A DNA stretch of 64,000 nucleotides from Paragordius varius (Eukaryota > Animalia > Nematomorpha), in NCBI GenBank assembly GCA_964247055.1, contig OZ176054.1, positions 4,154,001 to 4,218,000 of the forward strand, written 5' to 3'. The position numbers and the translations under genes were made by a program. Below the pieces are notes generated by a model, which saw nothing but the letters and a program-made list of their open reading frames with translations, was not told the origin of the DNA and made no database searches. Below, in pieces: positions 8,764 through 57,176 of this stretch (positions are counted from its first letter, which is position 1; every line of letters starts with the position of its first letter).

Positions 8764-9547
8764 ACATAGATACATAGCTGTTGTCAGGGGTCCCTTGGCA
8801 TCCCGTCGTGACGGGGTTTAGGTGTTTGATCATTGCATTGAAAGATTTTTTGTTTAACCAGTCCCCAGCTTTTGTTTTTGGCCTGTAGGTCATAGGTAAT
8901 GTTTTTGTCCCATGTTATTGCTGTACGACCCACTCTGTTTTGTTTGTTTGGCTTAAAGTTTGTTATATTTTTTATCCAATTATCGTTGTCTAATCTTTGA
9001 ATGTGACCGTCGCAGCCGAGTCTAAGGATTCGGATATATTTTGAGATTGATAGGATTTGTTTATCATGAGAGATTGTTCGGTTAAATGTATTTATCATTC
9101 TTTGTTCCATATTATCCAGCATATTTTCCTGTGTTTTATTTATTTGCCATGTTTCGCAAGCATATGTTATAGTAGGCCTAACGCCAATCAGGTATATTTT
9201 GTTTTTGAAGATATATGTTTGTTGGTGATTATGTGTTTATATTGGTTGTATCTACCACAACCAATTCTTATGCGATTTTTAATGGCTTCAGATGAACCTC
9301 CTTAAGCGGAAATGATATCACCAAGGTAGGTAAACTTTTCTACTTTTTCAATGTAGCTGTCACCAATTTTAAGGTAGGATACAGCTTCTATGGGTGTAAT
9401 GTATTGTTTGGATACAGTACATAGGGGGCAAATGTAATGTGTATATATATATTTGGCAAACAGCTAGGAAATGTGTAATTTGGTTTAGGTTCCTTGAAAC
9501 AAATAAACATTTTTGTAGCCTATTATAATTTTTGTTGAGTATCACTG
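8638..9547. mobile_element. Non-autonomous hAT (Buster-type) element containing an RTE insertion
   Basis: Left end CAGTGGTACTCAAACCGCGGCCC at 8638, preceded by ATCTAGAT (nnnTAnnn). Right end TTGAGTATCACTG at 9547. The right flank ATCATATC only partly matches the left TSD. Confidence 0.65.
8725..9480 (-). mobile_element. 3' fragment of an RTE-clade non-LTR retrotransposon with a (TA)n tail
   Basis: Minus-strand translation: IEKVEKFTYLGDII..GGSSEAIKNRIRIG..RPTITYACETW..RLGCDGHIQRLD..RVGRTAITWDKNI. The stop codon is followed by a TA microsatellite at about 8725-8770. Confidence 0.85.
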
Positions 9548-9901: not shown

Positions 9902-10483
9902 TTAATCTTTCCATCTTGAATTTTCATAATCCCATCTAGCGGCAGGTCCATTAAATGGATGTTGTCCTGATTCTATCATCTTTTTCAGAATCAGAGCCTG
10001 ATACTCTGGCGTATAAGTGGACGGAACTTCACTAAATACTATTAATTTATATTATAAAGTAAACCATATCGGCTTGTCCAAATAAATAACCAAGTGGACA
10101 CAACAACACCCAAAAGTGTTGTAGCCAAATAGTTTTTCCAATATGGTATATAGGCATTCATTTCACTATAAGTTTGTCGAAAACTGTGACGGTATACTAA
10201 AAAATAAATATATTATGATAACAAGTTCGTTTTTCTTCAAGCGAAAGATTTTTCCAACTACCAATTTCTTTTTCACGCAGTTTCATTATGTCAGGAGTAT
10301 TGGCACGAAATCTTACCCCAGGACAGGGTGTTAATGGTATATCTTGATAAATTATGAAAAAATACCGAAATATGATGGTTCCCCATTGATTCCAAAACCA
10401 ACTATGTCACGATTCTTTACTAAAGCATTGCCATACATATATGCATTAAAAATGCGGCTGGCAGAATGAGGTTTCAACATCAT
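9902..10483 (-). CDS. COX4: Cytochrome c oxidase subunit 4 (nuclear-encoded, protostome-type); 4 exons; absent from the ORF track as a coherent protein
   Basis: Spliced through GT-AG introns 10343-10365 (23 nt), 10197-10222 (26 nt) and 10039-10064 (26 nt): (M)MLKPHSASRIFNAYMYGNALVKNRDIVGFGINGEPSYFDIPLTPCPGVRFRANTPDIMKLREKEIGSWKNLSLEEKRTLYRHSFRQTYSEMNAYIPYWKNYLATTLLGVVVSTWLFIWTSRYVFSEVPSTYTPEYQALILKKMIESGQHPFNGPAARWDYENSRWKD*. It has the COX4 W..LS..EK..LYR.SF motif, one TM helix and the terminal WDY...W. Start at 10483 or 10480. Confidence 0.93.
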
Positions 10484-10495
10484 ATTGGAAAATGA

Positions 10496-11236
10496 ATGTG
10501 TAAAATGAGATCATTTATAAGACGGTTCTTCATACAATCTGTAGATACCCCAAATCCCAATAGTCTAAAATTTTTAACCGGGAAAAAGCTTAATATTGAA
10601 GGGATTCATGAATATAAATCTGAAAATTCTGCATCAAACGCACCATTAGCCAGGTACTAATTTAATTATTTAGAAAATTGTTGCAAATAAACGGTGTTAA
10701 AAGTGTTCTTATTAGTCCGGACTTTCTGACCGTAACAAAGGTATTTACGGAATTATTTTTTAGAGTGATGAAGAAAATGAATGGACAACGTTAAAACCCC
10801 TAATTATAGAAATCTTATCTAATTTTCTAAACACCGATCAACCTCTCATTATAGAAAATAAAGAAAAAAGCCCTGAACACAGTGATGACTCTGATACAGT
10901 TCAGATGATAAAAGAAATTCTTGATTCCAGGATTAGGCCCACGGTTCAAGAAGATGGGGGTGACATCACTTTTATAGTTTAATGTGCCCATATATAATGT
11001 TATAGTCTTACATAGATGGTATTGTTAAATTAAAAATGCAAGGTGCTTGCGATAATTGTCCCAGCTCCACTGTTACATTAAAACATGGGATAGAAAATAT
11101 GTTGAAATATTACATCCCCGAGATTAAAAGTGTTGAACAGGTTAAAAATATGTATTAAAATTGTTAGGCAGAAGATTATTTGGATATTATTAACAAGAAT
11201 GCAGTTGAGAAATTGGAAAAAAAGATAAATGATTGA
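10496..11236 (+). CDS. NFU1: Mitochondrial Fe-S scaffold NFU1; 5 exons
   Basis: N-terminal [15 protein letters not shown], central [20 protein letters not shown] and CxxC motif [23 protein letters not shown]. Introns of 20 (10654-10673), 23, 29 and 27 nt, all GT-AG. Start at ATG 10496 or 10505; TGA at 11234-11236. Confidence 0.95.
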
Positions 11237-37476: not shown

Positions 37477-47710
<10,234 letters not shown>

Positions 47711-56694: not shown

Positions 56695-57176
56695 TTATTG
56701 AACTTTTTGTATTCCCTTTTTGCCAATTAAAGATTTATGGATATGAGGGATAACACCTAAAGATTTAAAAATAATTAAACCTCCGCCAGCAATAGTGGCT
56801 CTTATTAATGAATCAAGCTCCTCATCACCTCTAATAGCCAATTGTAAATGTCTGGGAGTAATTCTTTTGACTTTAAGATCCTTACTAGCGTTTCCTGCTA
56901 ATTCTAAAACCTAATAATTATTATTTTATAAATACTTCAGCAGTCAAATATTCCAAAATAGCCGCACTGTAAACTGCAGCAGTTGCACCTACTCTTCCAT
57001 GACTTGTCGTACGTGTTTTCAAATGTCTATGGATCCTGCCAACGGGAAACTAGACATAATTACGAATCTATACTTGTAGTCCGGCCCTAGCAGATCTAGT
57101 AGTTGCTTTAGACTTAACTTTTCCTGAATCTTTTCCAGCTTTACCACCAGCCTAAATTTTAAATCAAGTTTACCAT
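56695..57176 (-). CDS. H2AZ: Histone H2A.Z (H2A.V); 5 exons, the first being ATG only
   Basis: M|[26 protein letters not shown]|[38 protein letters not shown]|[43 protein letters not shown]|[20 protein letters not shown]. Introns of 22, 24, 25 and 24 nt; AATAAA about 30 nt after the stop. Confidence 0.99.

Follow-up and report, generated by a model that had tools for sequence, protein, structure and literature searches.

To our knowledge, introns shorter than about 30 nt were until recently believed to be absent from animals. The introns of Stentor coeruleus measure 15 to 16 nt, with a putative branch adenosine at +10 or +11 and a lariat loop of 10 to 11 nt, and they are spliced with conserved U2/U6 elements and a conserved Prp8 cavity (PMC9505925). 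Nucleomorph introns are mostly 18 to 20 nt long, those of Paramecium and Nyctotherus about 25 bp (PMC5014332), and the type B introns of Trichomonas vaginalis have 23 to 25 nt and a branch motif at -8 to -12 (PMC12316389). Among animals, introns are mostly shorter than 30 bp in the myxobolid myxozoans (median, 22 to 27 bp) and in Dicyema japonicum, where classes of 20 to 27 bp have been analyzed (PMC13644364, Mol Biol Evol 2026); the same 2026 study of myxobolid cnidarians and dicyemids predicts that further lineages with such introns exist. Parasitic flatworms have bimodal introns, with modes at about 32 and 58 bp in Gyrodactylus salaris (PMC4040987). Our literature search found no report of tiny introns in horsehair worms (Nematomorpha), and the main text describing the Gordionus genome (26.9% GC, 64% repeats) does not contain the word "intron" (10.1101/2023.06.26.546503).

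Here, we describe the 20 bases GTACTAATTTAATTATTTAG, located at 10654-10673 on the plus strand of a 64-kb stretch of Paragordius DNA (the window), within a five-exon NFU1-like gene. Taken as a whole, the data make it quite probable that this segment is a genuine 20-nt intron, that it arose by shrinkage of an old intron, that its branch adenosine is the A at +12, and that it is handled by an essentially conventional spliceosome. That the 20 nt are excised in the RNA is something we infer from the genomic sequence.

The NFU1 gene and its first intron

Judged by its predicted domains, the gene is NFU1, coding for an Nfu-type iron-sulfur scaffold in which an Nfu_N domain precedes a NifU domain that has a CxxC motif. 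Profile and structure searches were run one exon at a time; they placed Nfu_N (PF08712) on exons 1 and 2 and NifU (PF01106) on exons 3 and 4, and the human NFU1 N-domain (2LTM) was the sole or best PDB match of exons 1 and 2. The four introns have, in order, 20, 23, 29, and 27 nt, and all four run from GT to AG. The features of the gene are as follows.

10505-10653, plus strand: exon 1, which carries the ATG, a short N-terminus rich in Arg, and the initial half of Nfu_N; its terminal AG is part of a split Arg codon (basis: Pfam Nfu_N profile 1-41, E 1.9e-07; 2LTM residues 10-51; synonymous variants at 10565 and 10651)
10654-10673, plus strand: intron 1, 20 nt, GT..AG, phase 2
10674-10740, plus strand: exon 2 (Pfam Nfu_N profile 43-64; 2LTM residues 55-75)
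10741-10763, plus strand: intron 2, 23 nt, phase 0, not present in the related scaffolds L001 and L002
10764-10976, plus strand: exon 3, linker and start of NifU (Pfam NifU profile 1-23), with four synonymous variants
10977-11005, plus strand: intron 3, 29 nt, phase 0, at a position common to L001 (60 nt) and L002 (67 nt)
11006-11140, plus strand: exon 4, NifU domain with CxxC (CDNC) (Pfam NifU profile 27-67, E 2.3e-17)
11141-11167, plus strand: intron 4, 27 nt, phase 0, without a counterpart in L001 and L002
11168-11236, plus strand: exon 5, with a TGA stop at its end

Upstream of the 20-nt segment, the coding sequence ends in APLA plus the AG of the split codon, and downstream of it the frame resumes with A. 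If the segment is kept, the frame reads AGG TAC TAA, with a stop at the third codon. The immediate TAA on retention that the initial annotation had described is thus present, and an unspliced RNA, with the TAA two codons on, would give a 51-residue fragment only. Across the join, the Nfu_N profile stops at position 41 in exon 1 and begins again at 43 in exon 2, with the split codon in between. The structural alignment runs equally smoothly: residues 7-48 of exon 1 correspond to 10-51 of 2LTM and residues 2-22 of exon 2 to 55-75, and counting over the join gives Ala49 = 52, the split Arg = 53, and Lys1 of exon 2 = 54, with no residue gained or lost.

In-frame, stop-free GT..AG pairs around intron 1 were enumerated exhaustively. 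The sole usable donor was the one at 10654, and the acceptors available to it were 10673 (20 nt), 10703 (50 nt), 10715 (62 nt), and 10763, the last of which skips exon 2. Use of 10703 or 10715 costs 10 or 14 residues, respectively, that match the Nfu_N profile, 2LTM, and the two related scaffolds; the 10 residues retained by the 20-nt choice and lost with the 50-nt choice align with HLFRIEGIKG and QLFRVEGIKG in the relatives and with LFRIEGVKSV in the human protein. Because the 50- and 62-nt choices delete conserved residues, the 20-nt excision is the sole domain-preserving choice, and an intact NFU1 domain would require exactly this excision. Both the earlier claim that the segment must be excised and the earlier estimate that the next downstream AG would remove about 10 conserved residues are therefore borne out, the former by the seamless join on Pfam and 2LTM and the single usable donor, and the latter by the 10 residues lost with acceptor 10703.

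The intron starts with GTACTA and ends with TTTAG, an acceptor that resembles those of the other tiny introns of the window. U12-type introns have the 5' splice site /RTATCCTT and the branch site TCCTTAAC. The 5' end found here is GTACTAAT, as opposed to the former, and the latter motif is absent from the 20 nt. We conclude that 10654-10673 is almost certainly, as far as sequence can tell, a genuine 20-nt spliceosomal intron of the U2 type, with GT-AG ends and in phase 2, that interrupts an Arg codon in a functional NFU1 gene.

The closest relatives, P0001 and P0002, were found by a word search with exon 3 and are 47-49% identical to it across the entire exon; the same kind of search with exon 1 returned no candidate relative. 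Their genes lie on ENA metagenome scaffolds (L001 and L002; also L003 and L004), and the L001 and L002 contigs are AT-rich eukaryote DNA with 29-30% GC. A counterpart of intron 1 is present in the relatives in the same Arg codon after PLA and in the same phase 2, with a length of 59 nt in L001 and of 64 nt in L002 and L003. This homologous intron position indicates that the 20-nt segment is a shrunken ordinary short intron. The position of intron 3 is shared as well (60 nt in L001 and 67 nt in L002), and introns 2 and 4, which have no counterpart in L001 or L002, were either gained in the Paragordius lineage or lost in the relatives. Elsewhere on L001 (1-8365) and L002 (1-7161), for example in the adjoining strumpellin gene, introns have about 40-67 nt, and none shorter than 30 nt was seen there. 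As a separate observation, the octamer AATTATTT is common to introns 1 and 2 of the Paragordius gene, at +11 to +18.

Four public runs, which come from two studies, also have the 20 bases in their contigs. These contigs keep all NFU1 introns and also span intergenic DNA, and hence are DNA-like, and they show no joint at intron 1; that of run X5 is gap-free over 10509-10778. Among the best-supported differences listed, NFU1 has six exonic variants, two of them in exon 1 and the other four in exon 3, and in the modelled frames every one of the six is synonymous. This speaks for a functional gene read in precisely these frames: selection acts on the modelled NFU1 frames. The intronic variants among the same best-supported differences are at 10663 (+10 of intron 1) and at 11143 (+3 of intron 4), the latter a T>A change that turns the start of intron 4 from GTT into GTA. 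In two runs (X1 and X2), the contigs exceed the window by one letter at some point within 10484-10728. The extra letter lies either between the start codons of COX4 and NFU1 or inside intron 1, and in the second case the intron has 21 nt in those strains. The start codons of COX4 (minus strand) and NFU1 (plus strand) diverge with 21 bases between them (10483-10505), a gap that would be an extremely compact divergent promoter.

Tiny introns in the window

Gene models were made with a simple dynamic program and curated by hand. The resulting set comprises 31 introns with lengths of 20-35 nt, spread over six genes, namely, NFU1, COX4, H2A.Z, PRP8, cGMP-dependent kinase, and dynein heavy chain. 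NFU1 intron 1 is the shortest and the sole 20-nt case among the 31, followed by a model-based 22-nt intron of H2A.Z. The interior of these introns is 87% A+T, 30 of the 31 start with GTA or GTT and thus have A or T at +3, and T stands at -3 in 26 of 31. In Paramecium, introns that are free of stops and have a length divisible by three are depleted, in connection with translational control. Four of the 31 have a length that is a multiple of three, a count to be read with the bias of detection against such introns; a stop-free 24-nt candidate in H2A.Z was missed by the gene model. In sum, the window holds a class of tiny, AT-rich introns of 20-35 nt whose signals are reduced to a 5' GTW and a 3' TAG. 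According to the gene models, introns of 100-2000 nt occur in the same genes as the tiny ones.

This class rests on homology and not on statistics. A statistical scan of the window for GT..AG between coding-like frames gave no separation from control dinucleotide pairs (43 for GT-AG versus 29-44 for the controls without a GC filter; 34 versus 9-23 with the filter); codon usage in this genome is not biased strongly enough. In PRP8, four consecutive segments align to the human protein.

44191-44325, plus strand: human PRP8 1402-1446, no gaps
44349-44519, plus strand: human PRP8 1447-1503, no gaps, alignment identical
44546-44674, plus strand: human PRP8 1504-1546, no gaps
44702-44848, plus strand: human PRP8 1547-1595, no gaps

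With the human numbering running gap-free from 1402 to 1595, the lengths of the intervening introns are fixed at 23, 26, and 27 nt. The gene model had proposed a second 20-nt intron at 44525-44544 in this region; by the human PRP8 alignment, the true intron has 26 nt (44519-44544), and the candidate was rejected. From this error it follows that in-frame alternatives are not to be trusted without homology. A further boundary error of the model, at 44675, gave 45 instead of 27 nt. Over its whole length (37477-47710, plus strand), PRP8 has about 33 introns in the approximate model, around half of them of 23-35 nt and the others of 42-380 nt.

In the H2A.Z-like gene (56695-57176, minus strand), the first exon is apparently the ATG alone, followed by the 22-nt intron at 57152-57173 and later by introns of 24 and 25 nt. 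An extra stop-free, in-frame GT..AG segment of 24 nt (56757-56780) lies between AGGG and VIPHIH and adds eight residues if retained.

The genome has about 29% GC and contains retroelement debris. Its genes are of animal type (LIS1, cGMP-dependent kinase, and dynein), and TAA is used as a stop codon, with H2A.Z and COX4 ending at TAA at their expected C-termini. A ciliate such as Paramecium, which a GC content of 28% and introns of 20-29 nt would suggest, was rejected as the source on account of these TAA stops, the animal-type genes, and the introns of 100-2000 nt. An Rfam search of the 64-kb window gave no match. Between 8000 and 9400, contig depth exceeds that of the flanks 10- to 100-fold in all four runs, with many rearranged joints; this region is a high-copy repeat with a reverse-transcriptase-like open frame at 8787-9236 on the minus strand.

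Branch site and mode of removal

Two motifs of intron 1 come into question as the branch site, and both are present at the positions (+7 and +12) given by the initial annotation.

10662-10666, plus strand: TTAAT, preferred candidate for the branch site; the A is at +12 (10665), equal to -9 from the 3' end
10657-10661, plus strand: CTAAT, alternative candidate for the branch site; the A is at +7 (10660)

Within the tiny introns, A is commonest at -9 (19 of 31 versus a background of 36%), a weak enrichment (p ~0.003 before correction for ~14 positions) in sequence so rich in A+T that it also yields such motifs by chance. The verified 26-nt intron of PRP8 has a TAAT whose A is likewise at -9. The most likely branch adenosine is, on these grounds, A+12 in TTAAT. 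The A+7 in CTAAT is an unlikely branch because CTAAT overlaps positions +4 to +6 of the 5' splice site. In our model, an old intron, of 59-64 nt in the relatives, would have shrunk to 20 nt; branching at A+12 would form a lariat loop of 12 nt and leave 8 nt between the branch and the splice junction, and the whole intron may be recognized as a single unit by an essentially conventional spliceosome.

According to the initial annotation, an intron of 20 nt comes close to the physical limit for lariat splicing, and this size implies an altered mechanics of the spliceosome. The first of these claims is overstated in view of published introns that are shorter still (15-16 nt in Stentor and 18-20 nt in nucleomorphs). 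The second is not supported as stated, given the conserved U2/U6 elements that accompany the shorter introns of Stentor and the four PRP8 segments that align to the human protein without gaps. Of the proposed loop of 7-12 nt, the upper value is what a branch at +12 gives, and 12 nt is within the published range. Since shorter introns are published, altered mechanics are not needed for 20 nt. By analogy with these systems, then, a 20-nt intron falls short of the physical limit and represents the lower extreme of a known kind, not a new splicing mechanism.

It has nevertheless to be considered that the 20-nt intron is spliced only through an altered geometry of the spliceosome, in which the pairing of U6 and that of U2 could not both fit and the loop would be confined to 7-12 nt. 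Indeed, with the branch at +12, the sequence leaves no spacer between the U2-pairing region and the 5' splice-site positions, which it abuts, and for Stentor it has been proposed that non-conserved regions of Cwc25 and Isy1 avoid steric clashes (PMC9505925). However, PRP8 is gap-free relative to human residues 1402-1595 in all four segments and identical over 1447-1503, the ordinary introns of 100-2000 nt in the gene models reside in the very genes that carry the tiny ones, and shorter introns elsewhere are spliced with conserved U2/U6 elements (PMC9505925, PMC13644364); we therefore regard an altered geometry as unlikely, although it deserves to be kept in mind. A longer real intron, extending from 10654 to 10703 (50 nt) or 10715 (62 nt), with the 20-nt form minor or absent, would have the conventional size seen in L001 and L002, and both choices are in frame and free of stops. 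The 10 or 14 residues that it would remove, however, match Nfu_N from position 43 onward and 2LTM from residue 55 onward and are conserved in L001 and L002, and the 10673 acceptor, TTTAG, is like that of other tiny introns, so that a longer intron is distinctly improbable.

Still less credit can be given to the view that nothing is spliced at all and that the gene is an NFU1 pseudogene, the 20 bases an insertion, or the segment an assembly error. The GT..AG ends, the intron in the same codon of the relatives, the six synonymous variants out of six in the exons, and the recovery of the segment in four runs of two studies all speak against it, as do the three other tiny introns of NFU1, which restore the frame in the same manner. 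Removal by a route other than the spliceosome, be it cytoplasmic splicing of the IRE1 type, programmed elimination of DNA, or bypass during translation, would be suggested by the size of the segment, which resembles that of the 23-26-nt xbp-1 intron and of the sequences eliminated in ciliates. GT..AG ends are, however, common to some 30 segments of this kind from unrelated housekeeping genes, the segment is missing from none of the DNA contigs, and its position is homologous to that of ordinary introns in the relatives, and we consider this kind of removal so improbable as to be practically negligible.

Significance and comparison with other short-intron systems

At 20 nt, NFU1 intron 1 marks the lower bound of a class of tiny introns in yet another animal genome, one that is AT-rich and also retains long introns. 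In practical terms, gene finders that impose a minimum intron length will break such genes. The intron further bears on the minimal sequence that one spliceosome needs to recognize an intron, and by itself it does not show a new mechanism. A broader proposal, which we put forward tentatively and to which we give somewhat less than an even chance, is that a bilaterian with a large, repeat-rich genome splices introns from 20 nt to kilobases in length with a core spliceosome close to that of humans. If this is true, the class would bottom out at 20 nt, the branch would lie at -9 and the lariat would measure 12 nt, the lineage would be additional to the two groups described in PMC13644364, and a system would be at hand in which one spliceosome handles both extremes of intron length.

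The introns of Stentor are like NFU1 intron 1 in their GT-AG ends, their AU-richness, and a putative branch adenosine at a fixed short distance from the ends, resulting in a very small lariat loop. They differ in their length, which is uniform and 5 nt shorter, and in their branch A, which lies at +10 and only 5 nt from the 3' end, whereas the lengths in Paragordius are spread and the branch is likely at -9. The loop proposed for Stentor (10 nt) is smaller than the 12-nt loop proposed for NFU1 intron 1. Paramecium and Nyctotherus share with Paragordius the size range, the AT-richness, and the GTA..TAG ends of their introns. In Paramecium, introns reportedly reach a minimum near 20 nt, as described by Russell et al. 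in 1994. Both genera, however, have a reassigned code and short introns only, in contrast to Paragordius, which uses TAA as a stop and has genes of animal type. In Trichomonas, as in Paragordius, there are two length classes per genome and the branch motif (in Paragordius, the candidate one) adjoins the 3' splice site, and the spacing proposed for NFU1 intron 1 (-9) is close to that of type B introns; Trichomonas has about 60 introns and a strongly conserved CTAA, whereas Paragordius has numerous introns and a weak motif.

Among animals, the flatworms differ in that their short mode lies at about 32-37 bp, whereas the Paragordius class reaches 20-26 nt. The myxobolids and Dicyema are animals with signals reduced to GTa and AG, with weak upstream A residues taken as the branch, and with intron positions conserved with longer introns of other animals, all of which resembles the situation in Paragordius. 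Their genomes are compact and nearly all of their introns are short, whereas the Paragordius genome is repeat-rich and its introns extend up to thousands of bases.
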